Part shown: in pieces, positions 5,764 through 63,148 of the stretch
How positions within the stretch are numbered: position 1 is the first letter of the stretch
Layout: every line of letters begins with the position of its first letter
Assembly (NCBI GenBank): GCA_051530055.1
Contig: CM121342.1
Span: 14,399,480 to 14,463,479 of the forward strand
Length of the DNA stretch: 64,000 nt
Direction of reading: 5' to 3'
DNA from: Neoechinorhynchus agilis
Lineage: Eukaryota > Animalia > Acanthocephala
The notes under the pieces: model-generated
Databases searched by the model: none
What the model saw: only the letters and a program-made list of their open reading frames with translations
What the model was told of the DNA's origin: nothing
Made by a program: the position numbers and the translations under genes

Positions 5764-6006
5764 GTAGAAATAAATTACCATTGTTAGTTACAAAGTTTGT
5801 CAATAGCATAAAAGCAACCGACCTAATTTGCTAGGTTTTTTACTGAGCAAGAGATTGAATATAAATGCAGTTTCAAAGCTAAGATCATTGAGTTAGAACA
5901 AAAGAAACAAAAACCAAAAATGTCATATATCATTGTTCTCGGGGTGAATTTGATTGTACGTTGGCGAATCATGTCCCCGGTGTTATCGATACTCATTTAT
6001 TTATTT

Positions 6007-6046
6007 GAGAAATATTTCCCAAGGTTTTCCTTGCCTCTTCAGTCTC
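6007..6046 (-). ncRNA. Inverted partner hammerhead with C11.1>G mismatch
   Basis: Reverse complement reads GAGA-CTGAAGA-G-GCAAGG-AAAA-CCTTGG-GAAATATT-TCTC. Confidence 0.65.
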
Positions 6047-6396
6047 TATCTAAAACGGACATGATATAAACAGCATGCACAGCCGGTCATTTCTGGATGT
6101 AGCTCAGATCCGCGGGTTTGCTAATACCCGAAGTGTGGGGGGTTTCGATCCGCACACACCTAATTCTTGGGGCCATTCACATCCGCGGAAATCCAACGAT
6201 GGAAGGCAACAAATCAAACTTCACTCTGGTGCTACCAAAGTTGCGTAGCACGACGAACAAATTAGTCGGCAACAAACCGCAAGAAATGTGTGCGGATCGA
6301 ACCCCCACACTTCGGGTATTAGCAAACCCGCGGATCTGAGCTACATCCAGAAATGACCAGCTGTGCATGCTGTTTATATCATGTCCGTTTTAGATA

Positions 6397-6436
6397 GAGA
6401 CTGAAGAGGCAAGGAAAACCTTGCGAAATATTTCTC
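6397..6436 (+). ncRNA. Minimal type I hammerhead ribozyme (structurally intact candidate)
   Basis: Stem I GAGA/TCTC; core CTGAAGA plus extra G; stem II GCAAGG-AAAA-CCTTGC; GAAA; palindromic stem III (GAAATATTTC); predicted cleavage after AUU at 6432. Confidence 0.8.
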
Positions 6437-6501
6437 ACATAAATAAATGAGTAACGACAACACCGGGGACAGGATTCGCAAACATACAAACAAAAACTAA
6501 A

Positions 6502-8583: not shown

Positions 8584-11500
8584 GAAGAAAGCTTTCCTTG
8601 TCCAAAACATTCTTCCATTGCAAAGCATCCTTCCACTCCAAAACATCCATACACCTCTACCACTCATGCCTACCGCAAAACCAATTTTCCTCCACCTTAA
8701 TATTGCCTGTCGACAACTCTCCCGAATCCTATTTTCTTTTTCCGTTCCCGGTCACCATTCAGCTCATCCCCAACAAAAGCTCTAATAACTCTCGTCCTCG
8801 TGAACTCAGAATCACTTTCCATCTACCAAGCACCGACTCCTTCCTTCAAAAGCGCTTCTTACTTGTCAATTTCTCCCTACCATACCGAATATACCCAGAC
8901 CACTCACTTCAAACTGTGAACTACAATCATCATTCGCCTATGAATAATCGTCTTCTCTCCTCTTCCATTAACTTGTTACAAGCCAAACCCTACTCTCAGA
9001 ACTCACATGTAAATTTTTGGACACTTCCGAAAATCGCCACTGTACGTTGGCAGAATCAAACATTACCACTCACTCAAAATTCGCTCAGAAACATATCCAC
9101 TCAACTCATCCACCAGCCAACTCCCGCAAACCACATATTCCTTCAAGCTCTTTAAAACAGCTATTTCCCTCTATTCTTTTCACTAACACAAGAAATCTGT
9201 TACCAAAAATAGATCATCTTCCACTTTTAGCCACTACCACCAACGCAGACATTCTGGTCATTGTGGATACATGGCTGCATTCCTCCAATTCCGACATCGC
9301 CTTTATTCCTGGCAACACGTCTTCCACTCTTACAGAGACGAACGCGTGGGAGGTGGAGTCTCCGTTTTTATTCGGTCCGACCTCCCTTACTCCCTCTCCC
9401 CCTCAACTCCTTACCAATCACCATACTTAGAGTACATCTACATCACGCTCTCTCTCAAACTTCGATCAGGCAGCCGAAATTTAACCATTATCGGTATCTA
9501 TCGTCCTCCCTCAGCCAATCTACAAATAGCATCATAGGAAATTGATGCAGTGATAGCAAATCTTCACTCTCTTGGTCTTGAACGGGCCACAACTCACATC
9601 TCGATAAAATCTTTACTAGCATCCACAAATACCAGAAGGCTGCTAAAAAACCCACCTCCAATTTCAACCTCAGTCCATTGCGCAATAATCCTCGCTCCCC
9701 CCGCTTCTCCTCAACGTGTACGGTCATCCCCCCTTTACGGTCTGGGACAAGAGAGACCAACACATTTTCTCATTTACCAAATTGGCCTCGCGTAATCTCT
9801 CTTAACACCCAAAATCTATTTTTCACCCGAACTCCTCGAAGGCTATGCTTTCTCTAACTAATCTACTCTCTTCTTGCACGACTACAGCTATTTTTAGGAA
9901 AACCATTCGCCATTCCAGCCGAGACCCACCTTGGATGCCCGATTTCTTGAAAATGCTCCAAATAAACGCGAATAAAGCATAACACGCATGCAATCCTGAT
10001 TCCCCCGCCTCCAGTCCTCTCTTGCGCATCACATTCTCAATTCACGTAACACCTTTCTTGCACATAAACTCGCCTCCTCTCCCACTCGTCTTTGGTGGAA
10101 AAACACGAAACGCGCCCTATGCATAGAAAGACAGAAACCTTTCTCCAACCTATCAAACTCCGACCTTCTTGCTACCCTAACCTCTATCAATGCGCAACTT
10201 TGTGACTCTCACTCGAACACAAACAAACCATCATCCACTTCCAGATCTACATCATCGCTCGCAGCTCCTACAGCTTCACCTCCCATGATTTCCACGTATG
10301 ATATCCTCATGCATCTTCGGAAACTACCACGCAAATCATCCCCTAATTCTCCGATTCCCAACTGGGCTCTACGCTTTATCATCCCAGATTTAATTGATCA
10401 ACTTATCCATATAATCAACCAAAGTTTCAAGACCGGAATCTTCCTTAATTGCCTTCAAACACCTGGTGTAATCCTGCTCCCGAAAGCAGGTAAACTTATA
10501 TCCATCTCAAGTTTTCGACCCTTCTCTATCTTACCTCCCATCTCTAATATCTTAGAAAGATGCTTTAGAGCACACCTTCTGCAAATCATCAATGGAAAAA
10601 TATATATGTAAGCACGTTTCATTAATGTAAGAAATGCACGATCCACACACTTTCCAGCATCTATCTTTGCTGAAGGTGTCTGGATGACGGATGTTGAAGG
10701 CAAGTTAGGTGGGACTTGTCTTTGAAGGGGTGTTGATGTGCGATCGGAGGCTTTGTACAGGAGATGACCGATTGAGAATCTTTCCTTGTTCTCCGGTTAT
10801 TAAGGAAAGATTGGACTCGGGGGGAAGAAAGATTTTTGGTAGAGGGTGGCACCAGCGAGGGGAGATCAAAAAGGTTGGGGTTACGGGTGTTTACGAAGGA
10901 AGAGTATTTAGAGATGAAAGAAGAAAATTGTGGAGGGAGTTGAAGAAGACGGAGAGCGTTTTTGGAAAAAATGGAGTGGAGGTGGGCGTCGAGGGAGGGA
11001 GTGAAGTCCCGCATATTCTAGCTGCTCTCTTGTGGAAGGTCTCGAGGGAATGGAGAACATTGACGGAGAGGGCGAGGAAAGTGGGGAAAGCGTATATAAG
11101 GATAGGAAGGATGGCGGAAAGATAAAAGTGGGCAAGGTGTTTAGGGGATACGCCGAGACGCCGGAGAAGTTTAAGAAGGTAAAGACGAGGGTTTGCTTTA
11201 GAGAGTGTAAATGAAACGTGGGCATCCCATTTAAGGTTTTCTTGAAAAATCAGGCTCAGTATTCGGAGAGAAGAGAAGCGTTGTATGGGGAGAGTGCTAT
11301 GCGCGGGGATAAGATTGCGTTTGGAAATGTGGGGGTCCGGCTTTTCTTGTACGGACGCCCTTCTTTGCATTTCGATTCTCTTCTTCATAACCTCGACGCA
11401 CAACCTTTATTTTTCTCTCGACTTATCCAAATTGACATTCATAAAGTTGTTGACTCCGTAGATCACAATCTTCTCCTTGATACATGCTCAAAATTTGGTC

Positions 11501-12460: not shown

Positions 12461-15436
12461 GGGGAAAACAAATTTATCTAAAGCGTCTATTACTAACAAA
12501 CAATCAATCAAATCTTCTAAACTGAAGAGTTCATAATAACACAACTTTTGCTATTCATAATGAGGCAGATCTCTTCCCTCCGCCCACTTCGCCCTCGATT
12601 TCGGCTCGCTGTACTGTATGCGATCGCGTCATAGGCGTGACGATAAGTGGGCTCATTCGAAAACATCGCCCGGTACGATCTCGACGCCCTGGATCTTCCC
12701 TTCCACCAGTGTTGGACAAACCTTTTATCATCGACGGTCACGAAACTCAAAATGTGATGAAGCGCCTCTTACAATATCTTCCAAACACGCTCTGGAAGAG
12801 GATTCCAAAAGGAGCCAGGAACAGCTGCTGTGAAATGTTCTCGAAGCTGCTGGCAAACTGCCTATCTGAACCGACGAATACAAACTATTCACGTTTATTC
12901 GCCTTTCCAAAATTGGTTCTGAGTACTAGCCGTGACCCCGAGTCCAGCCTCACGACCACCATCAAGCAGCGGATAACCAATTTTGATCGACTTTTTGAGG
13001 AGGCTGTGACGAAAAGTTACAATAATCAAACTTTACCAAGAAACGTCCAGAAGGACCCTTCGGCCGCCGTTATAATTTGAGTAATAGGATTTCTGCCAAA
13101 TTGGCAGACGCAGATGTCCGTGGAGCGGTCAGGTTACTCAGTTCCACGGCTACGTTTGCGGACAACGACCGCTCGACACTGGAGGCGTTGAGAAGTAAGC
13201 ATCCTTCAGCTTTGCCACCGATTTTGCCCCCGATACCGGAAAAGTCGCGTCAATCGACGAGGTGCACGCGGGAGGAACTTAGATGTGCTGTATCCTCGTT
13301 CCCCAATGGGTCGGGACATGGACCCGACGGACTTCGACCCCAACACATCAAGGATATGTTGGGATTTGGAACGGGAGTGATGGGAATGAAGCTCGAAACC
13401 AAACTCGTTAATGTGGTCGATGAAATCATAAATGGACCTCTCCCACTTGAAGCAACGAATTTTCTATTCTCGGCATCTCTTTGCGCCCTTTCCAAATCAA
13501 ACGGAGATATTCGTCCGATAGCTGTGGGCTGCACTCTAAGACGTTTGGCAGGGAAGATTTTGTGTAGGCGACTGAGCGAAAGGGTAGGTGAGCAACTCAG
13601 ACCTTTTCAGTTGGGCTGCTGTACTCCATGTGGAGCAGAAGCGATAGTGCACTCCACACGTACCTATATCGACGCCTCTGCCACCCCAACGGTTGTCCTA
13701 AAAGTCGATTTTTCGAACGCCTTTAATACAGTCGATCGAACAGCCTTGCTAATTACCATTGCTCGAGAATTACCTGAAGCCTATGAATACTTTGTGAAGG
13801 CGTATGGTTCTAAGACACCTCTACATTTCAACGAGCACACCATTTGGTCCGAAACAGGCCTGCAACAAGGCGATCCTCTCGGCCCCATAGGATTTTCCTT
13901 AACAACCAATGGAATATCTCGTGAGCTCAAGGCAAGTTTGAACGTCTGGTACTTGGATGACGCGACATTGGGCGGTGACCCAAAGACAGTTCTAGAAGAC
14001 CTGCAATCCCTGCTTGTTTCTGCTGCGGAATTGGGCTTACGTGTCAACCCCGCGAAGTGTGAACTATTGCCACTAAATATTTCACATTCTCGCATGACGG
14101 ATATAATGCAGTCCTTCGAATCCGTTGCCCCAGGAATCCGATTAATCAACCGGCAAAGCTTCACTCTTCTCGGCAGTTGCGTCCTGGATGCGAACATAAA
14201 TCGCGAGATAGAAGAAGAGCTTCCTAAACTGGATCTTTTGTGCTCCCGCGTTCAAGAATTGAATGCACACGAAGCTCTCTTCTTGGTGAGAAACTGCCTA
14301 TACATACCGAGGCTTATGTTCAAGATGAGAGCAGCCCCGTACTTCCGACACACCAAACGTCTCCTTGACTTAGATGGTTTGATGAAAAAGCATCTTGAGA
14401 AGGTAACAAACTGCGCCATCACTGATGAAGCTTGGCAACAAGCTGCCCTTCCGATCAAATACGGAGGTTTAGGCTTACGAAGTGTGGCTGGTTTGGCCCT
14501 TCCGGCATTCGTATCCTCGATGCACAAGACGGAGGAATTACAGGGGGAAATTCTTTTAAACAGAATGCCGAAGCCATGCAAACTATTGAAACAGGGAGTC
14601 ACATCATGGCTCTCGCAGGCCGGTCTGCAACAAGCTCCAACCAACGCGCACGAACAATCTGCTTGGGATAAACCCTTAATCCTGACGGCTCACAACAAAC
14701 TAAAAGGCCAGATGGACGAGATGTCTCAAGCTAGACTTGTGGCCAGTTCCTCGAAGGAGTCAGGCGCATGGTTGAACGTTTTGCCAATTGGTACTTTGGG
14801 AACTTTGCTGGACGACGAGACAGTTCGAATAGCCGTCGCTCTACGTTTGGGACTTCCAACCTGTGCCCCACACCAGTGCCGATGTGGAATAAAAGTTGAC
14901 GTGCTCGGGAGACATGGACTCTAGTGCAACAGATCGAGCGGTCGTTTCCCAAGGCACGCAGAGCTCAACGCGATCATTAGCAGAGCTCTGAACTCGATGC
15001 ACGTTCCAACCATCCTGGAGCCCAGTCCCGACGGTATGACCGTTTTCCCTTGGAAAGAAGGGAAGAGTCTAATTTGGGACGCAACATGCGTGGACTCACT
15101 CGCCATGTCCAACCGGCAAGATGCTTTAGCGGAGACGGGAGGAACAGCGAGTGCCGCCGAAAGGAGGAAAGCGGAGAAATACAGTGAGCTCAAACAAAAT
15201 TACATTTTCCTTCCTTTAGGCGTGGAAACACAAGGGGCGCTGGGATCTTCGACACGAAGCTTTTGTGCCGAACTCGGACGACGACTTGCAGCACAAACAG
15301 GGGAGCGACGCGAGAGGATTTTCCTGATCCAAAGAATAAGCCTCGCAATCCAACGAGGAAATGCGGTCAGCGTCCGGGGGACGATTTAAATCTAAAATTG
15401 TCCTTTAAAAAAAAGAAACAATAAAAAGATTATTAG
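12461..15436 (+). mobile_element. CRE-clade non-LTR retrotransposon (zinc finger, RT, CCHC knuckle, REL endonuclease), near-complete, 10-bp TSD
   Basis: CTVCDRVIGVTISGLIRKH zinc finger; RT motifs GPDGLRP, RPIAVG, DFSNAFN, QQGDPLGP and YLDD; C.CG..H..C..RH knuckle; REL motifs PDG..PW..GK..WD and E.RK..KY. Flanked by CAAAAAAAAT at 12451-12460 and 15437-15446. Lesions: frameshift at ~13078, TAG at 14922, and a short linker before PDG. Confidence 0.93.
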
Positions 15437-15923: not shown

Positions 15924-17936
15924 TTAAGCAGACAGTTCAGTATTCCGCTCAACAGACGTGGGCCGCGGTATAGAGTTCGATATTGTTGGAATAGAATGCG
16001 AGCTAGTCCTTTTCACGCTGCCTTGCAAGTAATCACTTTCTGCTAATTGTTTGATATCGGGTCGCTGTCGTACTTCGTATGTGAGGCAATATGAAATAAA
16101 CGCTCGGCCTTCATTTGAAGTGGTAGGTTTCACTGGAAATTGAACATGTTTAGCTTTCAAAATAGTTTCACATTCTAGAAGTGCCGATTGCGACAGATTG
16201 TGCCCAAATGGTTTGCGGCCAAACAAACACTGAAAATAGAGGCATCCGACAGACCATACATCCACCTTCGAGGAAATCTTCGGAGGCTTCAAAGATTGAA
16301 CAAACACTTCTGGCGGTAGATACCAGTAAGTTCCCGCACCTTGAGATGTCAGATCCATTCCACGTTCAGGGTCGTATACGTCGTCGTGCATTTGCTTACT
16401 GAGACCAAAATCGGTCAGTTTTACTTTTCCGTAGTCGTTTCCAGTACCGACAAGAACATTAGCTGGTTTCAGATCGTAGTGTATAACGGGAGGTTTAACG
16501 CAAGTGTTTAAATAAAGAAGCGCACTAACAATTTGATTCAGGATGCTACGAGCTTCTTTTTCGGCCAATTGCTTTTGCTCTTTTAGTACGAGGTCCAAAT
16601 CTTTTCCATCGAAAAATTCAAGAACCGTACAAAACCAATCTTGGTCCATGTCAAATGCATCAATGAATTGAACAATGCGGGGGTGATTGACCGTTCGAAG
16701 TATATCGTTCTCACGAATACCATGACGTATGTAGTTCATTTTCTTCTCACGACTCCATTCTTTATTGAGCATGTGAATCTTACAAGCAACGTATCGAAAC
16801 TCTTTTAAGTCGTAGGCTTTATGAACTTCACTGAATCCACCTTTTCCAAGCAATTTGACCATCAAAAATCTGTCACGAATCAATGTAAATCCATTGGATG
16901 TATAAATTGCACACTTGACCAGCGCACAGCAGAAAAAAATTGGAATTCAATCTCCAAACAAAAACAACCACCTTTTCCCATTGCTGGTGCTGGTCAAGTA
17001 AGTGCAAAACGTAATGGTACAATTAATCTTAAGCTCAGGCGGATTTTGATAGAACGTACTATTATCCTCTTGAAGAAGTCTTTTCATTTCTCTAATATGC
17101 AAACTCTTTTCCTTGTCCAGTTTTTCATACTCAGCCATAAGTTCAGTTTCTTCTTTCTTAAGAGCAGCCGTCCTAATTCGAACAAGATCGTCATGTTCAC
17201 AAAACTCTCGAAGGAGAAGTTGAGGATTGTCGCAATATTCGTTAGACCATGATTCGGCGCTATCATTGTTCCTACCAAGACCAGCAGCCAAAGACTGTTG
17301 AAGTCGATTCATATCGGTTCTACGTTTGGACAGCGCTTTCTTTTCTTTTTCCAGTATCTCCCTTCTTTTATGTAGAACTTTTTGTATACGATCGAGCTTT
17401 TCGTACTCGAGACCATTCCGCCATACTTCACAGTAAGTAATCGCATGTTTCTGCGGAATGTACTGACCGAGTCGTGTACAATTCATCGATGATACATCAC
17501 GAGCTCGTTGACGATCAATCACGGCTTCCTCTTCAATCATCCGTTGAACTGCACTAGTGGCTGACGAGAGCGAAGCTTTTAAAACATCAACTTCTGACCG
17601 ACACTCTTGAAGACGACCGATGACGTCATCGCGTTCATTGAGAGCAGACGCCAATTCCATCCGTAAATCTTCTCCCTCTTCCTGACTTTGTGAAGAGCGG
17701 TCGAAATACGAAGACGGGTTAATTTGTTCTATAAGACTCAGATCTTCGACTTTTCGGCAAACGTCGCCTTGTATTGGCCGTAAATGAGAAAGAGACGACC
17801 GAGGCAAGTTTTGAGGTGAAGGTGTTTTTGCGGACGTCGATGGAGAGGTCGTCAGTCTACGCTTCTTCCGTTTGGGTTTTTCTACACTTACCAGTTGGTT
17901 ACTGGTGTGAGTTGGCACTGACGTTTCAGGTCGCAT
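15924..17936 (-). CDS. TLK: Tousled-like kinase (coiled coils plus Ser/Thr kinase)
   Basis: LLGKGGFSEVHKAYDL..VACKIH..HYDLKPAN..KLTDFGLSK..TSQGAGTYWYLPPE..ISSKVDVWSVG; the upstream ORF is in the same frame with the TLK coiled-coil pattern (EKSLHIREMKRLLQEDNS). The two ORFs are separated by an insert containing TGA. Further 5' exons are possible. Confidence 0.95.
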
Positions 17937-18135: not shown

Positions 18136-18598
18136 GTCTTCACTCGATAAAGAGTTTATCGAAAGCGTTGTGCGAACTTCTCACAAAGAGGTAGAACAAA
18201 CTCCTTTTTTGTGGTTTGAGGAGTGTTTTTAGGAAACTCTTTATCGGGTGAAGACTTCTATACTTCCTCGCATATCGACAAATCAGAACTAGATTTAGGA
18301 CATCGCTTCCTGGGCTTTTAAGTTTTGTGCTTTTTTTGGCATGAAGTCACACCGATCTCTTACATCGATGTAATTTAATCACTTCTTATTTGATTCTTTA
18401 TAGATTGGTTTGGAACTAAAAAGCCCACTAAACAGATTGAATTGAGTTTTGATTTGTCGATATGTGAGGAAGTATAGAAGTCTTCACCGATAAAGAGTTT
18501 CTTAAAAATACTCTGCAAATATAAAAAAAGGAGTTTATTCTTCCTCCTTGTAAGAAGTTTGCATAACGTTTTCGATAAACTCTTTATCGAGTGAAGAC
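18136..18598. repeat. MITE-like inverted repeat, ~155-bp arms, each arm itself internally inverted
   Basis: 18136-18291 is the reverse complement of 18446-18598; the motif TCTTCAC(T/C)CGATAAAGAGTTT occurs four times in alternating orientation. Confidence 0.88.
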
Positions 18599-19773: not shown

Positions 19774-20914
19774 TCATTAAAATATACGACCCAGCAAAAG
19801 TAGTCGGCCTAAACATAACGGCTATTTCGCTCGCGCGCGCATTGTTTTATTCGAATTTCAAGGAAATCGTAAGACGGCGAAAGCTCGAAAATGAAAATCT
19901 TTTTTCAAATACTTGATCACATCAGTTCCGAAATAAACCCATCTCGTTAGTGCAACCCCTCCATATACAATAATAAATGGAAACATTATGACGGAAGAAT
20001 AAATGTTGTTGTAAAGCCGCTGGGCATTTTCTCTTAAAACAGAAATCTGGGTATTGAATTTACGCTTCGATTTTCGTCATAAACCCACTTATCTATTTGA
20101 CACCCCGAAGGATTTTACGATGACGTTTTGCACCTACTTTTCCCCTGTCATTTTGTATATCCGCTAGTTAGAAGAGAACTTTTGGTGGGTAGAGAAGGTC
20201 GAAAAGTGAGGATCATAATTACTGTTTAGAAATCTTCATTCCTTACGTGGTTCGCAGGACGTTTTTAACCGAAATAATTATTTACCGGGCGAAAAATAAT
20301 AAACAATAAGTATAATCCGTAATATTTCTATGACGTTTCATCAACTTACAAGATACGCAAGGTTATTTAAGCTAAAACGTTAAGCGTTCAAAAAAGAAAT
20401 TTTACTATTAACTACCGATATTATTTGAGTTCGTATGCTGCCAATACCATTTATTATATTTTTTTTAAATATTCAGCACCGATCTAATTTTCGTTATCAC
20501 CATAAGTTCAAAATACCACACAGATTGAAAATATACAAATAGTTATGATTTGTCCATAGTTTGTTTGGATGAGGCCGAGATTAATAAACTACACTAAACT
20601 TATTCAGAATTGTTAAAGCATTGAAAAATAATAAAAAAGTTACGTAGTTTTTTTCGCGAGGAAAGTTGGTTAACGAAAACGATCCCATTGCAAAAAAAAC
20701 TGCATAACTTTATTATTTTTCAATGTTTCACGTAGAGGACGAAATATTAAATTACCTTTTTGTCTTAAGGTCATAACATGGGTTTTTTAACGCTTTGCGA
20801 ACCATCGGAACACCTAAAACGTTGCATGATAAGTCCACAATTCATATTTAAAACGCAGATTTGGAAAGGTCAACTTCGATTTGTTTCGGACATGAAATCA
20901 TTCACACCACCGTT

Positions 20915-23533: not shown

Positions 23534-24472
23534 ATTTTGCTATTATGTTTGTGAATAGGGTTGGCACTCTCGTATTGGAATTTGGAAATTCATAACTTCT
23601 CGGTGATTGGCAACGGTCTTTAATGAGTAGTCAGTCCATACCTTACATATAGAAATCAAATAGACCTATTCGGATGACTATTTGGCTTTTACAGCGATAG
23701 TCTATTCGCATTATAATATAAAAAAGTAGGCTGAGAGTGATTTTTATTTATGAACGTTATTTGACTGAAGATTACAAAAAAAAGACAGGTTCCCCAATTC
23801 TTGAATATTCTGAGCGAATCACTAAGAAAATTCGTGAATCAGCATTTCCAATGTAAAATATTGAAGAGCTCACTTTAAAGGTGAGTGGCTCTTAAAACAT
23901 CGTCTACTTAAATAATCTTTATTAATTCCTAAGTATTTTCCCATTGAATCCACTCAATTCGTGACAAATCTGAATCTACTTCTTGAAGCGCTTTAATGTA
24001 GGCAAACATTTAATTTCAATAAAACAAATCATGCTTACATGAATTGAATAGGTACCCTAAGATTTTCGATAAAAACAATGTAAAAAACAGGCTCTCTTCC
24101 AATCGTAATCACTGTACAACTATTATTGGATTCTGAGTGAAGCGTTATTTTAATTAGTTATTCATAAATGGCAAATTGATATACAATATTAACATAAGCA
24201 TACAAAAAACTCAACAAAACAATAAGACCAAATATTTTATACATTTGACGACAATAACGTATTAATCGTCAATGATTTAGAGACCCAAACTTACGTAACT
24301 CGATCGGCTAAAGAAAAACGTGAAAAGAACGTTTAGGCGATGGCCGAATCAACAAAATAGACGAATTCGAAAATGAATTATTGATCAGTTTGAACAGCAT
24401 TTTAGCTCTTTTGTTTTAGTAACATTAAAATTCTATCCAAATGTTCCTTCGAGTAGATGTGGATTCTCACTG

Positions 24473-24656
24473 GCGAATTGTAACACACTCGAGTTTCATT
24501 GAAATCAACCTTGCGAATTTTCACGGCTTCAGCATCCTTCTCAAGCATTGTTTTCGGACTCGAATTTTTCTTCGAAAACAATGCTTGGGAAGCAGGCTGA
24601 GGCCTTGAAAATTCGCAAGGTTGACTTCAATAAAACTCGAGTGTGTTACAATTCGC
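24473..24656. mobile_element. Twin-hammerhead fold-back mini-element (~85-bp arms)
   Basis: 24473-24558 is the reverse complement of 24572-24656. HHR-like motifs at 24512-24547 (-: TGC-TTGAGAA-G..GAAA-AT-T-C-GCA) and 24582-24617 (+). Confidence 0.82.
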
Positions 24657-25499
24657 GAGTGAGAAGAATATTAAAATGCTCAACTTCATATGCCACAATG
24701 TTGTTTCTAAAGACAGAAACTAGTGAAAAAATCAAGAAAAATAAATTGCAATGATGAGCATGATTTGAACTTATTTTAAGATCTTTTGACATATCTTCCA
24801 CAAACGTAACTGCTCCAAGCGCGATGAATTTATAGGAAGTTTTAAAAATAAAAAGAGCCAATCGTAAATTTTCCTCAGGATTGCATTATTGTTACCTTGG
24901 TCGCTTGTCAACTTCCGAAAGAGATCATCAAAGAAAAATATATTTTGATTGCTTGAATCAGTCATTATCAGTTCAATTGCTTATAAATGACCGATTCAAT
25001 AATATATTCTTCTTTAATGATATCTCTCGAGTGTCGACAAGCGACCTAAATAACAACGTAAATTTTCCACCTTGGGAATATATTATAATTTTTGAAATCT
25101 TTCATCTTTTATGAAACAGAATATGAGAACACAAAGTGAGATTAACAATTCGAAAAGTCAAAATGGAACTCCCTTTTCATGGCTCCCACAAAATTTTTTT
25201 ATTTTCCTAGTCAGATCGAAAAATTGACTTTACACGGTGGATACGATTTACCGGTTTAATATTTTAATCAACACAGACAATTAATAATTTTTCGCTAAAA
25301 CTTCGCATCATTTAAAACATTCCTTTATTTACTAGAGAATATTCCGACCCATTGGTAATAATGTAGAATAAAATTCATTGGTGCAAGTATAAAAATCAGT
25401 CTAAAATATAGATTTTGCGCATTGAAGAATCGAAGCTATCAACACCGAATTGCGCGAAATGTAGTGAGTAGAAGAAAAGTAGATTCAAGTGCGTTCAAA

Positions 25500-42241: not shown

Positions 42242-45200
42242 GATTGAACGTCAATATCTTTCAGAAAGTTAGACACACGAGTACGCAAGTGAGTTGCAAG
42301 AGAAGAGCAATGAGCTGTCGTTTTACGAGTAGGCAGTTCGTTTTTTCTCGTAAAACTCTCTTCGTAGGTGTATTGTCGAAGCAAGGGAGGCAACGATGGT
42401 ACAATCGTGTCTCCCGTTATGTGAATGAGGAATCAATCTAAGAACCGATTTATAAACTTTTTGTAATTAAGAAACCAAACGATTGTGGATGAGAATTGAA
42501 AGTACCCGAAGGAAGTGTAAACGAAATACAGGTGAATGTATTTTCCGACTGGAACGACGCAGAAATGACTGTAAACACGAGGTCATACTTAGAATAGATC
42601 GCTATGTTTGTGGATATCACCACGCAGACTGATAGTTACATGGAGATGGGGCTCGATTCGTCGCGCTCGCTGCGGTAGCGACTGAGCAAAGTGAAGAATG
42701 CATGCGACTCTGACTTGCAAATTGGTTCCTCGTGTATTAGAGTGCCTAATTTGCAAAGCAAGCAACACTTAAAAGTGCGACGGATTGAATGTTGATTTGA
42801 AATCATAGTGATGTTTGGAATACTTGGCACTGAAAATTCTCGTGGAACTGAAAAGTGAAGTAAAATAAAAAATTTCTATTCACTGTCTAAGGAAGCTTGA
42901 CGGCGCCTCAGTCGTCTAGGAATTCATGAAAAACAATTTCAACTCTAGTTCATGCTTTTTTCAATTGAACAGGCGACCATTTAGGGAATTTAAATGTAAA
43001 ACATGACTGAGCGACGCTTTTTTAAATAAACTCATTTTCATTTATTCAAGCTTTTTTTTGAAATTAGTGATTTCATGGCAACAAAATCTAAAACGAAGAA
43101 TAAACTGCTCATAAAATCTCTTGTGGAAATAAGCATTCATTAAAAATACGCAACCCATATAGATGAGACTGATATTTGTTTTAGTTAAAAGCAACGTAGA
43201 TTTCCTTAAACTGTTTTGCAGCGATTGCCTATTGTTTATGTGTAAGAAACCAACTTTTCGTCGCGAATTACATTCGATTGGTTAGATATGTTGTTATTTT
43301 AGTCGCTTGTACCAAAACCCAAGAAGGATCGTTAAAGTCGAATGTATATTTTGACTGATTGTATCAGTCATTTTATCAATTCAAATTGTTAAAGTATTAC
43401 GTTCACCTGCGGTTAAAACACTATATCGATTTGAATTGATAAAATATCGGGTGTCGAGGGCCGAACAAAATATTAACAAACCAACCTTTGTTTTTGTACT
43501 GATTATGCTTGAGACACAAATACTGAAATCGAAAAATGTTATCTCGTTTCGGAGGGTGTCAAACTCGCGTTTTTTGTTTTTTCCTTCTACTTTCACAAAA
43601 TTTCGATGTGAACGACGTGTCTCATTAACAGAAGCATAAACAGCAGGGAAAATGTTTGCGGATATTACAAAAAAATTAATTCAACTTTTCCGCCATAAAA
43701 AGAAACATGAATAATTCAATCTTCAAACATATTACTCTTAGAATCATCGATAATAGCATATAAAGATTCAAAGTACGTTTTTTGGAATCTGTCATTCCGT
43801 CGATCTACGACACGCCTATTTCCCCACAAGAGATGAACCACAAGGAAAGTCATCCATAATCTGTTCGGCACAACCCATGGTGGCATCAGAAAGGTTTGGC
43901 ACACCAACCTTGCATCGAAAATTGCTAAATGCGTTGCTGCCATGCACGATACACAAAATTCACTTCGTCTAGTCTACAGGAGTAATGGGAGTTTCTTGAG
44001 GTTTCAAAGAGAGAAAGGGCAGCACATTAAACTCATTTTGACAAAAGAAGAACTATTCTCACTTTGGGTGAAAGTTAAGGCTGAGGTAAAGGGTTTCATC
44101 TGGAACAAAGTATTACCATCGCGAAAATGTCAGATCTCTTTCCTGTTGCTTGGTCTTTACATGCTTATCTAAGCTTTATCATATCAAGAATGTCACGCGG
44201 CTTAAGTCGATCGCTGCACAAGATTGTCGTCGATCGCACAACCGGAAATTCAATTGGCGAAATCCACTTACGGTAAAACGATTGGCGGGTGTCCTCATCC
44301 GGAGAGGAGTGCTTAACGACCACCAGATGTGAAACAGGTCCGTATCTTCTAGGAAGCCTCACAGCACTTTCGATAGCACGAAAACGAGATCGTTTTTGGT
44401 CGATTAAAGGAATCGCAACTTTTCGATATTGATCATAGACGACGTGTTTTTATAGACAAGTGATCAGACTTTAATAGTTTTCATTATTTTACCGACCATT
44501 AAATTACGGCGATACTTCGGCACAATCTGGTGCATTTATTGAGATTAATTTGCAACCTTGATAAAGGCACGATATTGTGCCTCCAAAAGATCGAATTTAA
44601 TGAAATTCCTTCAATTTTTCCAATATTAACAAACAAGAATAATTCAATCTTCAAACATGTTAAATTACTGCAAATCTCACAACTACTTTTGAGATCTACG
44701 ACTTCCTTTGAAAGTGACTCGCTAAATTCCTCTTAGCTTGCACAGATCACCGTTAATAAATCGAAATATCTCACTTGAAGCCCGACTCTTTTTAATTTAT
44801 TCATGAGACTTGTTATATCTTGCAATCTAACTACGAAAACTGTCCAAGATATTGTCTCAATATTTCGAGTGGAAATGACTCGAGCGGGGTAAATGTCATG
44901 TGCAAATATTGCCTAATCAAAAGAGTTTCCTATATGACTATGAGCGTCTAAATTAATTAAAAGCGATCCCATTATCTTCGGGTATTTAAATTTTTCCACT
45001 CCAGTTAAGATAAGCACATAGATTTCTAGCATGTGAACGTTTATCGTGGTTATGCTCATTTGGCCGATGCCTGACAATTTTGTTCGTATACGAATTTCTT
45101 GCACTTAACAAATCCTAAAGACTTACAAGAAGCGGTCAATAAAAACGTTCATTAATGAGCACTTTGTGGTTAAATCCGATAAACTCGTAAAAACCGAAAA

Positions 45201-46389: not shown

Positions 46390-46606
46390 AATTATGCCTT
46401 AATGTTTATGGTCAAAAATCGAAATTATCTGTTGAATTATCCGCAATCTGACAAAATATTTACGACAATTAAAACGTGCTTGTCCCTTTTGCTTTTATTC
46501 TTTAAATCCCGGTGTAACTAATTTTGTGGCTCATTACAGAACCTAGAAATGCTCGATATAGTTCTTAAAATCATATCGAGAAAATCCATCGGGATGGCAA
46601 ATTTTG

Positions 46607-46804
46607 ACTTGTGGTGAAGATAATCCCGATTAAAAATCATTTTATTGTTCTGAAATATTTCGCGAGGAGACCTCGCCTTATCAATCATTGTTTTCGGAGG
46701 AAAATTCGAGTCTCCGAAAACAATGATTGATAAGGCGAGGTTTCCGCGCGAAATATTTCAGAACAATAAAATGATTTTTAATCGGGATTATCTTTACCAC
46801 AAGT
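46607..46804. mobile_element. Twin-hammerhead fold-back mini-element (~93-bp arms, 12-bp spacer), U3-A8 cores
   Basis: 46607-46699 is the reverse complement of 46712-46804. HHRs at 46651-46687 (-: TGA-TTGATAA-G-GCGAGG-TCT-CCTCGC-GAAA-TA-T-T-TCA) and 46724-46760 (+). Confidence 0.87.
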
Positions 46805-47239
46805 TAAAAGTTCTTAAAATATTACGGGATCAGATCCTATTTTTAATTGGGATATAAACACCTTAAACCGAGTTTAAAACTCGCAAGGTGGTGCGAAAGG
46901 AATATTAAAATACTTAGGCATGGCAGTGCGAATTCACACTTAGGAGAATCTGCTCGAGCGCTTACAAATAAAATGGTCGTCGAAACATAGATGACTAATG
47001 CGGAAAATATTCTATGATCAAATTTGAAGTCATAGGACATTCATTGACCATAATAGAAGGTATTCTTTGTTGGTACACTTGAAAAAGTTCATTGCCATCG
47101 ACCATTTAGACCCACAATATTTGTACTCATGTGAGACTAGCAGTTATCTTCAAGACGATCCAGTTGTCACCATCTACGTGATTATTTTATTGTATGACAA
47201 CGATTATCTTCTTGGGAGCGCATTACTCCATATCATAAG

Positions 47240-48045
47240 TTGTTCGGTGGCGCTGTATAGAATTTATATTTCTCCACAACCATGGACGAGCTCAACCATC
47301 TCATTTCCTCGCTCTCCACCCTAAACCTCTCCCTAAATTTATCTAAATCTTTTGAACTTGTCCTCCGCATTTCCAAACGCAACTTTATCCCCGTACCTCT
47401 CCCTCTCCCCATCCAACGCTCCTCTTCTCTCCGAATACTGGGCCTGATTTTACACGAAAACCTTAAATGGGATGCCCACATTTCATTTACCCTCTCAAAA
47501 GCAATCCCTCGTCTGTACCTTATAAAACTCCTCCGGCGTCTGGCGTATCCATTAAACACCTTGCCCACTTTTATCTTTCTGCCTTTTTTCCTATCCTTAC
47601 ATACGCCTACCCCACTTTCCTCGCCCTCTCCGCCAATGCTCTCCATTCCCTTGAAACCTTCCACAAGAGGGCAGCGAGAATATGCGGGACTTCACTCCCT
47701 CCCTCGACGCCCACCTCCACTCCATTTTCTCCAAAAACGCTCTCCGTCTTCTTCAACCCCCTCCACAATTTTCTTCTTTCATCTCTAAATACTCTTCCTT
47801 CGTAAACACCCGTAACCCCAACCTTTTTTATCTCCCCTCGGTCGTACCACCCTCTACCAAAAATCCTTCTTCCCCCAAGCTTAATCTTTCCTTAATAACC
47901 GGAGAACAAGGAAAGACTCCTAATCTGTCATTCTCCTAGACAAATCCCACCTCCCTGCCTCAACATCCGACATACAGACAACTTCAGCAAAGATAGATGC
48001 TGGCAAGTGTATGGATCGTTTTTCTAAATCAATAAAACGTGTTTT
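47240..48045 (+). mobile_element. 3' part of CR1/L2-type LINE (same family as 10605-11335)
   Basis: LRILGLILHENLKWDAHISFTLSKAIPRLYLIKLLRRL; long near-identity to the reverse complement of 10605-11335. Confidence 0.9.
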
Positions 48046-49040
48046 TATATGACCGCGACCCTCCATGAATAACCTCCATTATGAAACTTCTACAAAGGCA
48101 AGCTTCTAAGGCCCATCGCAATAACTCCGCAGACTCTCCCCGTTTACAAAAGGCAGTTACTAACAATATACTTATCGCCCGCAAAAATTTTCTTTCCTTT
48201 AAAATTCGATCATGTGACAACTCAACATGGTGGCGGGCCGTCAAGGACTCGCTTGGTCTACGCCACCCGGATCCCTTCCCTAATTAGTCCTCTACTGAAT
48301 TAAAACGGGTTCTAGATTCCATTAATCAGAACCTCTGCCCTGACTAAACTTACAATCGCTGCTCAACATCAGTCTCCACACAATCTTTCACGCCCGCACC
48401 TGAAACGTTTGTCAACTCGCCATACTCCCCTTAGTTTCATCCTATGAATTACTAAAGTATCTCATGAAATTACCAAAAAATTCGTCCCGAAATGATCCCA
48501 TCTCCCGCAACCCCCACATCATCACCTGAGCGTCTAAATAACATCCCACGAGTAACCTCCCTAAAAATTCGGGGTAGTCAATTTCAATCAAATTTGAAAT
48601 TTGACTCGCACATCACTCTCTCCCTCAAGCACAACACTTTTAAAATTTATCTCCTCAAATGCCTCCGACATTTAGAAATCCCTTCACCCGAACTCAACAA
48701 ATTTTACTTCTGCTATATCTTACCATCCCTCACCTACGGTTACCCCGTATTTTGCCCTTTCCAAATCGCTAATCCGCCGTCTTGAAATTCTTCGCAAAAT
48801 CTAAAATTTGTACAACTGATTTTCCCCCCGCACTGAATGTCTCGATGCTATTTTCATTAAATAATCAAAACGCCTTTCAACCCTACCACCACAATTTCTT
48901 CCACATATCGCTCCTTTTTCACACGAGCACAACACTCGTAATCCTAATTCGTTTAACCATCCTATACCTCGCACCTCCCTGTATCTGCGCTCCTTTTTCC
49001 ATGTTTCCCAATCTTCTCGAATATCATAACCCGAAATGAT
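48046..49040 (+). mobile_element. Decayed fragments of an older CR1/L2-type LINE
   Basis: STWWRAVK (resembles RLWWKNTK at ~10090); NLKFDSHI..IYLLKCLRHL..FYFCYILPSLTYG. Confidence 0.75.
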
Positions 49041-49789: not shown

Positions 49790-50470
49790 CCATCCATGGA
49801 CAAGGATATTGAGCTTGAGGTCAAGACATGTGCCGCGTGGCAAGCATTACGATCGAAGATTCAGTAAGTGCCTTTGATTAATTGGGACGTGCCTTCTAGA
49901 CTCTGGAAACGCATCCATGTCGATTTTGCTGGTCCAGTCGAGAACAAGATGTATCTGGTGGCCGTGGATGCCTATTCGAAGTATCCAGAAGTTTGGTCGT
50001 CTAATTCAGGATTCACTGCGACCACAACGATCACATGCCCACGAGAAGCTTTTGCGAGATGGGGTGTTCCCGAGAAGATTGTTTCTGACAATGAACCCCA
50101 ATTTGTTGCATCCGATTTCCGAACGTTCTGTCAAAACAACGGAATAGAGCACGTGAAGAGCTCACCATACCACCCAAAGACGAACGAGTCCGCGGAACGA
50201 TTTATCGGAACGTTGAACAGGGGATCTCTATTGATTCCGAGCAAAGACCGCCCTTTTGAGTTATCGCAATACTCCACAGATGACTACAAACCGCTGTCCG
50301 TCCGAACTTATTATGGGGAGACGCATTGCGACGAAGTTGGGTAACTTCAAGCCGTCTTTGGAGAAAACAATTAAATCCAGCCTGCGTAAACAGAAGGCAT
50401 ATCACGATACAAAATCAGAAGTTCGGTTCGTTCCCCACGAGACGAGAAGTGGAAGGAGAGAACGATAATA
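49790..50470 (+). mobile_element. Ty3/gypsy integrase fragment
   Basis: WKRIHVDFAGP..LVAVDAYSKYPEV..GVPEKIVSDN.PQF..GIEHVKSSPYHPKTN..AERF. Confidence 0.92.
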
Positions 50471-51530: not shown

Positions 51531-52490
51531 TCATATCGAGAAAATCCATCGGGATGGCAAATTTTGACTTGTGGTGAAGATAATCCCATTTAAAAATCAT
51601 TAACGATGCAGGACACTCCAAAAAGAGTCACCCAACATAAACAAGCCTGCCGACGTTTCGGTCATTCATCTAAGATTTAAAACCACCAAGAAACTATGCA
51701 ACGTAACATAGATTTTGACGGCACTGAATTTATAGAGAAGGAGCCAAATCTTTGAAGACGCCTTGTTCTTGAGGCCTTGCACATCTCGGCGTCCAATACA
51801 ATGGAAGGCAATAAAGCGAATTTCAGCGTAAAACTACCTGCTAGTTATGAAGTTAAAATCAATAGGACAAACGATACAGTGCAGGGTTTACGAGCTGGCG
51901 CACGGTCCCCGAACCTTGGAAGTAGCGAACCTGTCAACCCGAGCCTATCAGACAAAACATAGAAAAGAACCATAACCACAAACCATCGATAGAAAATCCT
52001 TTGGGCTAATCAAAGTATACTTTTGATGAAAATAATCCCGGTCATCACATATTTGATTTATTGAAAATATTTCGCGGGGTAAGCTCGCCTCATCAGTCAT
52101 CTAAAAAATGAATTTTACACATTAAGGTTTTGAGCTCGAGTGCGGCCAAACCCGAAGTTCGGGGATCAATTATCCGCTCGAACCCCAACGCTATATTACG
52201 TTTTTTCCTTTATTGTTAACTTTTTTAGATGATTGATAAGGTGATGGTTCCTCTTTCGAACTATTTCCTAATAATAAAATGATTTTTAATCGGGATTATC
52301 TTCACCACAAGTCGTAATGAGTTTTGTACTGAACACTCCGGATTCTGTACGTCATCAGCGGTAACGGATCCGAACCCGTTAATTTGAGGAAGAAGGAATA
52401 CAGAATTATGTCAATTACAATACAAAAAACAAAACATTTTTAGATAACTGATGAGATGAGACTTCCTCTTGAAATATCTCTCAATTCAAT
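51531..52490. mobile_element. Composite PLE locus: GIY-YIG C-terminus plus pseudo-LTRs of three subfamilies in mixed orientation
   Basis: 51603-51962 encodes ..LVLEALHISASNTMEGNKANFS. 51977-52195 is an inverted copy of 2940-3160. 51567-51600 and ~52279-52312 are inverted copies shared with the 46607 element. HHR-like motifs at 52062 (-), 52233 (+) and 52448 (+). Confidence 0.85.
52444..52482 (+). ncRNA. Decayed minimal hammerhead-like motif
   Basis: CTGATGA-G-ATGAG-ACTTC-CTCTT-GAAA-TA-T-C-TCTC; stem I poorly paired. Confidence 0.55.
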
Positions 52491-52960
52491 AAAATATTCT
52501 GTGTTTTCAGTGTGGCCTTTTTCCACGGCTGATAATTTTCCATTGGCACACAGCCCACCGATTCATTGGTCAAGGAAACGCATAAAATCACACTTAATAC
52601 CCTGAACCGTAAGGTTATAAGTTTGTAAGAATCCCTCCGGATTTTCAGATATCTAGCAAGCATAAGGGACGCATCAGTGGGTTTCCTTCTCCCTTCAACG
52701 AAGTATTTCGCCTGATTTACTCTTCAGAATCAGTTAGCGCGTCTCTTGTTTCATTCGAATAAATGACAAAGAATTCAAAATATCTATAAAGTACACCTCC
52801 GATACATTAATTTTCATGATTCCCATGTCAATTAAGTCGGACAATTAACGACCGCAATAGAACGAAGCGTGACGTCATTACATTGCTTTCTTTCGTCTCT
52901 ATCATCATGTTCGCTACAAGCGCGTATTCTAGTGAATACGACTGCAAAATTGTTTTCGGA

Positions 52961-53308
52961 ATGGCTCCTCCTGCGTCCTCAAAGTCAAAATCGAAAAAGG
53001 TTGCGGATAGCCTGAACAGACCTATCCAATTGGTCATGAAGTCGGGAAAGTACGTCTTAGGGTTCAAACAGACGATGAAAACCATTCGGAATGGTAAAGC
53101 TCAGCTCGTTTTACTCTCGTCAAACACTCCAGGTCTACGGCGCTCAATGATTGAATATCTTGCCTTCTTAACCGATGTCGGTGTTCATCATTACGCTGGA
53201 ACTAACGTCGAGCTCGGAGCCGTATGTGGCCGAAGCTTTAGAGTAGGCGCTGTCGCTATAACCGATCCGGGCGATAGTGATATCTTTCGAGTCATCAAGA
53301 AAGACTGA
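52961..53308 (+). CDS. RPL30: 60S ribosomal protein eL30, intronless and divergent
   Basis: [61 protein letters not shown]. Confidence 0.93.
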
Positions 53309-53426: not shown

Positions 53427-54278
53427 CAGGGTGTAACACACCCTTAGTACCCCCCTCCACAAGGAAAACTATAACAGATATTCTGATGCGGGTTTCAGGG
53501 TTTGAAGAGATTTTAGCGGCGTCACGAAAAGGGCAATCATCCTTATTTGTTTTGTGCGGACACCCAGACGTTTTTTATTATGCAAATTTTCGGAGAGCAA
53601 AGTCTCCCTCTTCAGGCTTTTGGTCATTGCTTGTAAAACAAATCTCGTTTCACCCAACAGTAATAATGAATGAAAATCATCCTTATGTGAGTCAAAATGA
53701 AAGTGACTATATAAACAGTCCCAATGTGTTCAGCGGGGTTGAGGTCCGGATACGACCCGGGCCACGGACTCGACTTCCTCTCCAGCTCCGAGTGGCCCGG
53801 GTCGTCTCCGGACCTCAACCCCGCTGAACACATTGAAGCGATCATCAAGGACGGGGTCGAGGAGCATCTCCGGCAGGACGGAGACCACTCCCAAGCAGCC
53901 CTGCGTCGAGCCATCGACGCCGTGCTGACCGGGCTGCGCGAAAACACCGGCATGTTCGAGCGCCTCTTGAGCTCCTACCCTGCCCGTATCAAGGCCGTTC
54001 TGGAGGCCAATGGCGGCCCAACTGATTATTGAATGTCATAGTGTGATATACCGTTGAATCCGTATTGAAATAAGCTTTCCAATGGTGATAAACACATCTT
54101 TATATCTTCACTGTTTTTTTTTCTGTGGAGGGGGGGGGTAGTAAGGGTGTGTTCCACCCTGTATATCGTTAGAAGCGTATTGAAATAAGCTTTCAAACCC
54201 TGAAAAACGCATCAGATTATCTGTTATAGTTTTCCTTGTGGAGGGGGGTACTAAGAGTGTATTACATCCTATATAGTC
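53427..54278 (+). mobile_element. Internally deleted Tc1-family DNA transposon with duplicated right end
   Basis: TA|CAGGGTG(T/G)AACACACCCTTA terminal inverted repeat at 53427 and (reverse) ending 54161; a longer ~85-bp inverted copy of the left end at ~54192-54278; transposase C-terminus WPGSSPDLNPAEH..LLSSYPARIKAVLEANGGPTDY. Confidence 0.9.
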
Positions 54279-62827: not shown

Positions 62828-63008
62828 TTTCAGTTTCAATTAGCGATGTTTGATTAAGAAAATAGATTTATCTTAAAAAATTTCGACCTTTTCTTTGGTC
62901 TTCTTCAGTCAGTTTTGTAAGCTTTGACTGAAGAAGGTCAACGAAAAGGCCGAAAATGTTCAAGATAAATCTATTTTCTTAATCAAACATCGCTAATTGA
63001 AACTGAAA
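62828..63008. mobile_element. Twin-hammerhead fold-back mini-element (~84-bp arms, 13-bp spacer), C3-G8 cores
   Basis: 62828-62911 is the reverse complement of 62925-63008. The + motif is TGA-CTGAAGA-A-GGTC-N8-GGCC-GAAA-AT-G-T-TCA; the - motif is TGA-CTGAAGA-A-GACC-N8-GGTC-GAAA-TT-T-T-TTA. Confidence 0.86.
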
Positions 63009-63148
63009 CTATAATGAATAATTTCTTTACAAAGTCTTAACAAATGTTGAGTATTTTTATATATATTTAAAAATGCCACCATCGTCACTGAGTAACTGCA
63101 CACTGACCTTTAATCTCCATTCGTCTGTATACAATTAGCTATTTGGTC

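Follow-up and report, generated by a model that had tools for sequence, protein, structure and literature searches.

Features of the locus

The window, by which we mean the whole stretch of 64,000 nucleotides of Neoechinorhynchus agilis DNA analyzed here (contig CM121342.1 of assembly GCA_051530055.1), contains the following features in addition to the ends of PLEs that are the subject of this study.

1-990: tandem repeat with a unit of ~335 bp (341-805 versus 1-474, 95%)
10604-11403 and 47282-48050: two copies, 84% identical, of what by eye resembles a LINE 3' region
13077-14924: non-LTR RT ORF of 615 aa (retroelement remains)
15924-16883 (-): protein-kinase exon (Pfam Pkinase, E = 1e-54), tousled-like by eye
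49868-50344: integrase fragment
52907-53308: intronless eL30 ribosomal protein gene, whose closest named relative, from Pomphorhynchus laevis, has only 65% identity
55444-58436: pol region of an LTR retrotransposon (protease, RT, integrase)
18136-18598, 20616-20728, 24889-25056, 43370-43445 and 53722-53835: five palindromes without a hammerhead motif (76-463 bp, 73-85% self-complementary), the last of which lies within a Tc1/mariner-like remnant (..DLNPAEHIE..)

A reading made from the letters of the DNA only (the sequence-only reading) had reported a 198-bp palindrome at 46607-46804 with arms of ~93 bp and a 12-bp spacer, and this palindrome is real. A repeat search placed its arms at 46599-46699 and 46712-46812 (101 nt each, 95% complementary), in agreement with a BLAST search of a single arm against the window, and the 12 nt that separate them (46700-46711) are asymmetric. 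However, the unit to which the palindrome belongs is larger than had been reported and is itself asymmetric. It is a 235-bp insertion at 46572-46806 with a tail of 33 nt on one side, and with its flanking TSD it is laid out over 46558-46820 as follows.

46558-46571: TSD, left copy, ATAGTTCTTAAAAT; the exact 12-mer AGTTCTTAAAAT is 46560-46571
46572-46604 (-): tail extension of 33 nt, on the left arm only; sense AAATTTGCCATCCCGATGGATTTTCTCGATATG
46605-46699 (-): left arm, minimal HHR and proximal tail; core U3-A9 at 46678-46684, bulged G and intact 6-bp helix II at 46662-46677, GAAAUAUU at 46654-46661
46700-46711: spacer GAAAATTCGAGT, homologous to the centre of 24432-24666 in the opposite orientation
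46712-46806 (+): right arm, minimal HHR and proximal tail without the extension; core at 46727-46733, helix II with an A.G mismatch at 46734-46749
46807-46820: TSD, right copy, AAAGTTCTTAAAAT

The PLE-derived portion of each arm is 95 nt, in the sense order CTCCGAAAACAATGA, TTGATAA, G, helix II, GAAA, TATT, TCAGAACAATAAAATGATTTTTAATCGGGATTATCTTCACCACAAGT, and the arms are mismatched at ~5% of positions. The stretch from core to core, made up of the spacer and the inner arm ends, is 42 nt. The extension of the PLE tail at 46572-46604 has no mirror on the right arm; together with the next 43 nt it is 97% identical to 51531-51601, and it is also homologous to the A-family sequence after the tail (3125-3160 and 51965-51990). 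Just outside the arms, the 12-bp direct repeat is exact at 46560-46571 and 46809-46820. When one mismatch was allowed, it reached 13 of 14 positions (46558-46571 versus 46807-46820), a score that was obtained in none of 300 shuffles. The search for a TSD that had been proposed with the sequence-only reading thus gave a repeat enclosing the whole structure.

Hammerhead motifs and predicted folding

Both arms contain the core TTGATAA (U3-A8), at 46678-46684 on the minus strand and at 46727-46733 on the plus strand, followed in each by a bulged G, helix II, GAAA and AUAU. The conserved core UUGAUAA .. GAAA is present in both arms with the 3-8 covariation kept. Helix II of the left arm is perfect (6 bp, GCGAGG/CCTCGC, with the bulged G at its 5' end and closure by G10.1-C11.1), and that of the right arm is broken by the A.G mismatch; in the PLE families D, E, F and G, the pairing of helix II is kept with differing sequences. 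Cervera & De la Pena described U3-A8 as a natural covariant of the minimal HHR and a bulged nucleotide as a trait of PLE minimal hammerheads (PMC4209133). Judged by sequence, the HHRs of 46572-46806 are type I minimal hammerheads in their core and helix II, with a predicted helix I of only 3 bp (UGA/UCA) against the 4-6 bp that serve as a criterion for this type.

With a strict descriptor (3-8 covariation, an optional bulge, a helix II of at least 4 bp closed by G-C, then GAAA), six minimal HHR motifs were found in the window, compared with 0.15 expected from Markov-simulated sequence, and all six have the bulged nucleotide. The hammerhead models of Rfam gave no match at the gathering threshold over the whole window or at E <= 10 over 45.5-53.5 kb; the Rfam matches obtained were only sub-threshold, miRNA-like ones caused by the hairpin. 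A blank result for hammerheads is expected, since the Rfam hammerhead models include helix III and PLE minimal HHRs do not have it.

On either strand, the insertion is predicted to fold into a hairpin of ~100 bp (-160 kcal/mol, z = -26). A single arm is no stabler than its shuffles (-22.5 kcal/mol, z = 0.07), and its MFE structure shows helix I (UGA/UCA) and helix II. Thus, as the sequence-only reading had supposed, a read-through transcript of either strand would bury its sole sense HHR in the long hairpin. For minimal HHRs, the cleavage described in the literature is weak and requires a dimer or a protein (PMC4209133, PMC11167929).

Head-to-head pairs of PLE ends

The sample comprised 113 kb from three N. 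agilis chromosomes, namely the window and ~50 kb added from the same assembly: L002 (CM121343.1), L006 (sequence upstream of the window) and L008 (CM121341.1). The loci were reached from the eL30 gene (P0001/L001), an RT fragment (P0098/L002), a RING ORF (L006) and an N-terminal profile (P0101/L008). Nine pairs of PLE ends were found in these 113 kb, all in the order minus/plus with the tails outward.

Window 5920-6487: family D, unequal arms; the plus arm reaches the ORF end (..MEGNKSNF..); 15-bp TSD and 29-nt one-sided extension
Window 24432-24666: B', tight palindrome of 235 bp; 11-bp TSD AAYATTAAAAT and 32-nt one-sided extension
Window 46572-46806: the palindrome described above (B_pal)
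Window 51532-52313: S1/S2-S4, asymmetric pair of the PLE family of 46572-46806; 12-bp TSD GTAWTGAGTTTT
51532-51601 (-): arm of S1/S2-S4 with the tail extension and 43 nt only
51602-52313 (+): arm of S1/S2-S4 with putative GIY-YIG C-terminal coding sequence and an HHR at 52233
~51965-52215 (-): A-family end nested inside S1/S2-S4
Window 62830-63031: family E, tight palindrome; C3-G8 cores CTGAAGA at 62908 (-) and 62928 (+), 19 nt apart; 17-bp TSD and 22-nt extension on the right arm
L002 9721-11381: unequal arms
L002 14709-14933: tight palindrome
L008 2322-2578: tight palindrome
L008 9169-10114: unequal arms

No close pair with the tails inward was seen in the 113 kb. All nine pairs are bounded by direct repeats of 11-17 bp (10-16 matches; P from <0.003 to ~0.03 against shuffled flanks), and all nine have 22-35 extra nt on a single arm, which in one of them (L002 9721-11381, 23 nt) are not homologous to the canonical tail. 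In the B family, the outer ends of three independent insertions recur: the non-extended arms end with ..ACAAGTC/T, and the extended arms of the same insertions with ..CTCGATATG or ..CTCAATATGAT.

Five of the nine pairs are tight palindromes with 42, 40, 19, 18 and 57 nt between the cores, and on the inner side the arms of these five end 3-17 nt upstream of the core. The arms of the other four are unequal, and there the longer arm runs into the PLE body. In D (5920-6487) and S1/S2-S4 it enters the end of the PLE ORF (..LEALHI..MEGNKANF..). In L002 9721-11381 it contains the RT motifs FTNVP/MGSPLAP and a GIYRMHCEHC..KIGET motif, the 118-aa ORF of the EN region scoring E = 0.049 with Pfam GIY-YIG, below the cut-off. 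In L008 9169-10114 an apparent ORF end precedes the plus-arm HHR, as seen by eye in the untranslated sequence. In six of the nine insertions, the shorter arm reaches no further than ~27 nt upstream of the core. Since the unequal-arm pairs run into PLE coding sequence, the tight palindromes represent the short extreme of one continuum. No full-length PLE copy was seen in the 113 kb.

Within each palindrome the aligned arms are 91-94% identical. The differences between arms cluster in the hammerhead or at the centre of three tight palindromes: all seven differences of the E palindrome (62830-63031) fall in 25 of 85 nt, one being a compensatory change of A-U to G-C in helix II; six of the eight of B' (24432-24666) are clustered; and L002 14709-14933 has four clustered G-to-A (sense) differences beside the core of the tail-bearing arm. 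They are not clustered in 5920-6487, which has a spacer of 125 nt.

An A-type PLE end at L008 9994-10040 has a U3-G8 core (TTGATGA), an intermediate of C3-G8 and U3-A8. Outside N. agilis, a locus of Pomphorhynchus laevis (L007) contains one minimal HHR and no related palindrome; PLEs are abundant in this acanthocephalan (PMC8557442, PMC7943196).

These results bear on the novelty and the copy number claimed in the sequence-only reading. A TSD of its own and extra sequence on one arm accompany every one of the nine pairs, an architecture known for PLEs (PMC8557442, PMC11167929, PMC4209133) and not one that sets a distinct fold-back element apart. A multi-copy family of the 198-mer was not recovered either: no second copy was found in the 113-kb sample, and the inner breakpoints vary between pairs, with the diverged relative at 24432-24666 as the one exception. 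Apart from that exception, this is, within the sample, the outcome that the sequence-only reading had itself named as refuting it.

A second palindrome with a related centre

The 40-nt centre of B' at 24432-24666, including the asymmetric spacer, is homologous to that of B_pal at 46572-46806 (~87% over 54 nt), and both units are exactly 235 bp. The arms of B' belong to a different, diverged and degenerate U3-A8 subfamily, and outside the centre the two palindromes are only weakly similar. In B_pal and B', the tail-bearing arm is joined to opposite orientations of the spacer, which speaks against the palindrome having been inherited whole. Opposite orientations are compatible with separate events on related RNAs whose leader is conserved. 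If the events were independent, the common centre needs a reproducible cause, for example a conserved leader or RNA 5' end.

B_pal, B' and H have an 'AACAATG' leader in related form, and so does one arm of the L002 palindrome. In a minus-strand unit at 53615 that has no recognizable partner HHR, a related leader extends further upstream. A metagenome scan with a 21-nt pattern of the centre gave three matches, none with a palindrome or HHR context, which we attribute to chance.

Leader and reading frame of the PLE end

The insertion at 51532-52313 belongs to the same family and links the palindrome to a coding PLE copy. The arms are 86-87% identical to 52229-52313, so the match of the HHR and 3' tail to a PLE pseudo-LTR at 52231-52312 noticed previously holds. 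The tail of B_pal is 94-97% identical to the tails of this ORF-bearing insertion, in which the ORF end (..LVLEALHISASNTMEGNKANF) lies upstream of the HHR within 51602-52313. The likeness ends at ATGA, just upstream of the core, where the leaders differ, as had also been noticed: the arms of 46572-46806 have CCGAAAACAATGA and the copy at 52229-52313 has TTTTTTAGATGA. The long-copy leader resembles the palindrome leader, the latter with ~22 nt missing (AATG[TGTAAAACTCATTTTTTAGATG]A). Among the long PLE copies of the 113 kb, none has a leader of the CCGAAAACAATGA type, and a search of the same sample for the leader ACTCGAATTTTCCTCCGAAAACA found it only in the two palindromes.

The long-copy leader TTTTTTAG|ATGA looks like a 3' splice site (window 3026-3037 and 52222-52232; L002 11266-11276), and GTGTAA/GTGAAA/GTAAGT-like motifs are present upstream of TTTTTTAG. 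[quoted passage not shown] We rejected a GT..AG mini-intron of 20 nt as the source of the leader difference, since its predicted junction would miss by 2 nt and the difference is better explained by a deletion between ATG repeats. A Pol III B-box in the spacer was rejected as well (weak match, wrong position).

Translation from the helix I ATG gives a peptide that is conserved between PLE families (MTDEASLPREIF.. versus MIDKARSPREIF.., 17 of 39 positions invariant, tail included), and the arms end ~+84 and ~+117 nt from this ATG. Thus, the earlier statement that the palindrome holds no coding remnant is true for RT and EN, but not for this ATG-initiated frame. A profile of the arm peptide had a single match among 1.84 billion proteins, P0101, in which a solo PLE end is translated on into the adjoining DNA. 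Since this is the only database match, we can only infer that the helix I ATG begins the PLE ORF. P0101 itself (L008 10001-10303) is annotated as an N. agilis 'protein' of 100 aa that starts at the ATG within a PLE hammerhead and enters the flanking DNA, and most likely is an annotation artefact of a PLE end. The C-terminal 97-mer of the PLE had no homologue in a protein search and no Pfam match, and no Pfam model matched the PLE RT fragments.

Origin of the palindrome

We consider it likely that 46572-46806 is a single, dead-on-arrival insertion made in N. agilis by the integration machinery of an endonuclease-bearing PLE. Directly observed are the TSD, a tail on one side only, outer boundaries that recur in the B family, an architecture found repeatedly, and a connection with copies that contain RT- and GIY-YIG-like sequence. 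In such an event, the RT/GIY-YIG complex of the PLE would nick both strands of an AT-rich target ~12 bp apart, and from each 3'-OH the PLE RNA would be reverse transcribed, beginning at either of two internal sites; the use of two start sites would explain why one arm has a proximal end (..ACAAGTY) while the additional 33-nt tail is found on the other. Both cDNAs, of only ~95-130 nt, would pass through the hammerhead and halt 15-27 nt upstream of the core, and their 3' ends would then be joined and filled in, giving two outward-facing HHR-bearing ends flanked by the 12-bp TSD. Both the priming on the two target strands in vivo and the way in which the cDNA ends were joined are steps that we infer. 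Because the outer ends of the B family lie at recurrent boundaries that differ between the arms, the arms may be regarded as two separately primed cDNAs of one event; they look like neither copies of each other nor one cDNA made through a hairpin RNA. The fold-back shape is a normal product of PLE integration with an architecture already published, and the palindrome is probably a by-product without function. The sequence-only reading was right that this is a non-autonomous, PLE-derived retro-insertion consisting solely of two outward-facing U3-A8 HHR ends. We also considered snap-back copying of one cDNA and rejected it, since both arms would then share the same outer end.

Some observations run counter to a single insertion of this kind. 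The arms stop at nearly the same point, and tight pairs (18-57 nt) make up five of the nine. The family's only long copy (52222) has a different leader, and the tail is always one-sided in the genomic pairs, whereas no strand difference was found in vitro (PMC11167929). The centre that B' shares with B_pal, and the 23 extra nt of L002 9721-11381 that are unrelated to the canonical tail, weigh on the same side. Random 5' truncation fails to explain the clustered inner ends; they would be accounted for by a template RNA whose 5' end is defined and lies next to the ribozyme, and such an end is probably the reason why both cDNAs halt just upstream of the HHR. It could be the transcription start of the PLE RNA or the start of a dedicated short RNA. 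Self-cleavage by the HHR was rejected as the cause of the inner breakpoints, as the cleavage site lies downstream, not upstream, of the core.

One alternative takes up the dedicated short RNA and regards the tight palindromes as a true, old and diversified family of non-autonomous mini-elements. The RNA, ~130-160 nt with a defined 5' end, would comprise the leader ..ACTCGAATTTTCCTCCGAAAACAATGA, the U3-A8 HHR and the tail, and PLE proteins acting in trans would prime full-length cDNAs on both strands, so that the product would always be an inverted dimer. The share of tight pairs and the closeness of their inner ends to the core (3-17 nt upstream) argue for such a family, as do the equal length and homologous centre of B_pal and B' despite their diverged arms, the recurring 'AACAATG' leader, and the difference of this leader from that of 52222 together with its absence from the long copies of the sample. 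However, since the tail of B_pal is nearly identical to the tails of the ORF-bearing insertion, the template could simply be the 5' part of an ordinary PLE RNA, made by run-off to the transcription start or from a leader variant without ~22 nt. Furthermore, the related leader of the unit at 53615 continues upstream, and the sample is just 113 kb. We give this alternative a small chance that is still worth bearing in mind. It is unlikely, in our estimate, that the tight palindromes are a distinct and long-lived class of acanthocephalan PLE parasites, namely short RNAs with the ..AACAATG.. leader and a U3-A8 HHR that are always inserted as inverted dimers, whose read-through transcripts would form perfect hairpins of ~100 bp and feed small-RNA silencing of PLEs.

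The sequence-only reading favoured a non-autonomous fold-back element whose transcript could act as a source of dsRNA/siRNA or as a structure-gated ribozyme. As a self-propagating retroelement, such a palindrome would be transcribed from either strand into a long hairpin RNA, which would be recognized via its 3' sense HHR and tail and copied whole. Folding of either strand into a ~100-bp hairpin and the asymmetric centre common to two palindromes are in favour of this, but one cDNA through a hairpin RNA would give a recurrent boundary at one end only, whereas both outer ends of the B family lie at recurrent boundaries, proximal and distal, in keeping with the two RT start sites already published. 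Copying of the whole unit would also preserve the relation between the tail arm and the orientation of the spacer, which is opposite in B_pal and B', and the 91-94% identity of arms within palindromes stands against the weak similarity of B_pal and B' outside the centre. In addition, dimerization of minimal HHRs needs a second sense copy (PMC4209133) and there is one per transcript, and the 113 kb hold no second 198-mer. A propagating fold-back family is thus partly argued against, and we regard a self-propagating element of this type as very unlikely here. Long-read assemblies can create inverted duplications, and replication errors can yield palindromes. A DNA-level artefact, either a fold-back chimera of the assembly or the repair of a hairpin-capped break at a solo PLE end, could draw on such processes, but the ~5% divergence of the arms, the 33-nt extension on one of them and the 12-bp TSD that brackets the unit all stand against it, and the same architecture occurs nine times on three chromosomes. 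We consider such an origin extremely improbable.

With a single PLE insertion as the preferred reading, 46572-46806 is an ordinary by-product of PLE integration in a newly sequenced acanthocephalan. Its value would lie in clean in vivo evidence for two-strand priming of reverse transcription, which has so far been seen only in vitro. That the short arms tend to end just upstream of the hammerhead hints at a defined 5' end of the template RNA beside the ribozyme, and such an end, if confirmed genome-wide, would help explain the puzzling inverted and tandem structures of PLEs. For annotation, units of this kind are best masked as PLE fragments; one of them (P0101) is already annotated as a protein.

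Comparison with known systems

A foldback or MITE-type DNA transposon was rejected as the nature of the palindrome, because the TSD is not fixed (11-17 bp), one arm carries an extra tail, the B-family arms end at two fixed boundaries, and a second copy is lacking in the 113 kb. Among retrotransposons, L1 elements reportedly form inversions by twin priming, as Ostertag and Kazazian are said to have described in 2001. Both processes would have a second priming on the other target strand, an inverted segment and a single retro-insertion flanked by a TSD. They differ in that the second primer of L1 anneals internally on the same RNA and adjacent segments are inverted; twin priming is not known to give two copies of one 3' terminal segment with both 3' ends outward.

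Like animal non-LTR retrozymes (PMC7229834; bioRxiv 10.64898/2026.07.22.740005), the unit at 46572-46806 is short, non-autonomous, HHR-bearing and related to PLE pLTRs. Retrozymes are tandem direct repeats whose same-sense HHRs dimerize and release circular RNA (Cervera & de la Pena 2020, PMC7229834; Li et al. 2026, bioRxiv 10.64898/2026.07.22.740005). Unlike retrozymes, one transcript of 46572-46806 holds a single sense HHR, because the repeats are inverted and the two HHRs lie on opposite strands; the sequence-only reading made this distinction correctly.

U3-A8 minimal HHRs were reported in Schistosoma, as were 'dual min-HHRs in opposite strands' ~100-700 bp apart (Cervera & De la Pena 2014, PMC4209133). 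As in Schistosoma mansoni Cercyon, the core is U3-A8, and as in the PLE min-HHRs of that study, a bulge precedes a long helix II, G10.1-C11.1 is present, a palindromic AUAU replaces helix III and pairs occur on opposite strands. The present case differs in its phylum (Acanthocephala), in the distance of just 42 nt between the cores and in the 3-bp helix I. The dual min-HHR pairs were described without an analysis of TSDs or tails (PMC4209133).

The canonical architecture of PLEs consists of a partial tandem or a pLTR, an adjacent inverted and 5'-truncated copy, and a one-sided tail of 30-40 bp (Evgen'ev & Arkhipova 2005; Craig et al. 2021, PMC8557442); the inverted truncated copies and the tail are regarded as a hallmark (PMC8557442; for the tail also PMC11167929). 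The pairs in N. agilis have in common with it the outward inverted copies, the HHR in the terminal repeat, the one-sided tail (22-35 nt), the variable TSD and the AT-rich target. They differ in that both copies at 46572-46806 have been reduced to ~95-130 nt, with only the two HHR ends left, and in that tight forms are a majority (five of nine, a small sample).

A mechanistic parallel is the Anolis PLE PAc, whose purified protein cuts each of the two target strands in vitro and extends it (Frangieh et al. 2024, PMC11167929). Reverse transcription begins at two internal sites located 111-118 nt into the ORF, and these delimit the tail; the ORF itself begins inside the HHR (PMC11167929). The arm ends at ~+84 and ~+117 nt from the helix I ATG are similar to this arrangement, provided that this ATG is the ORF start, as we suppose. 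In vitro, the start site of PAc was equal on the top and bottom strands (PMC11167929), unlike these genomic copies, in which the tail is on one arm only. The mechanism of PAc accounts for a head-to-head product with an optional tail, such as the insertion at 46572-46806.
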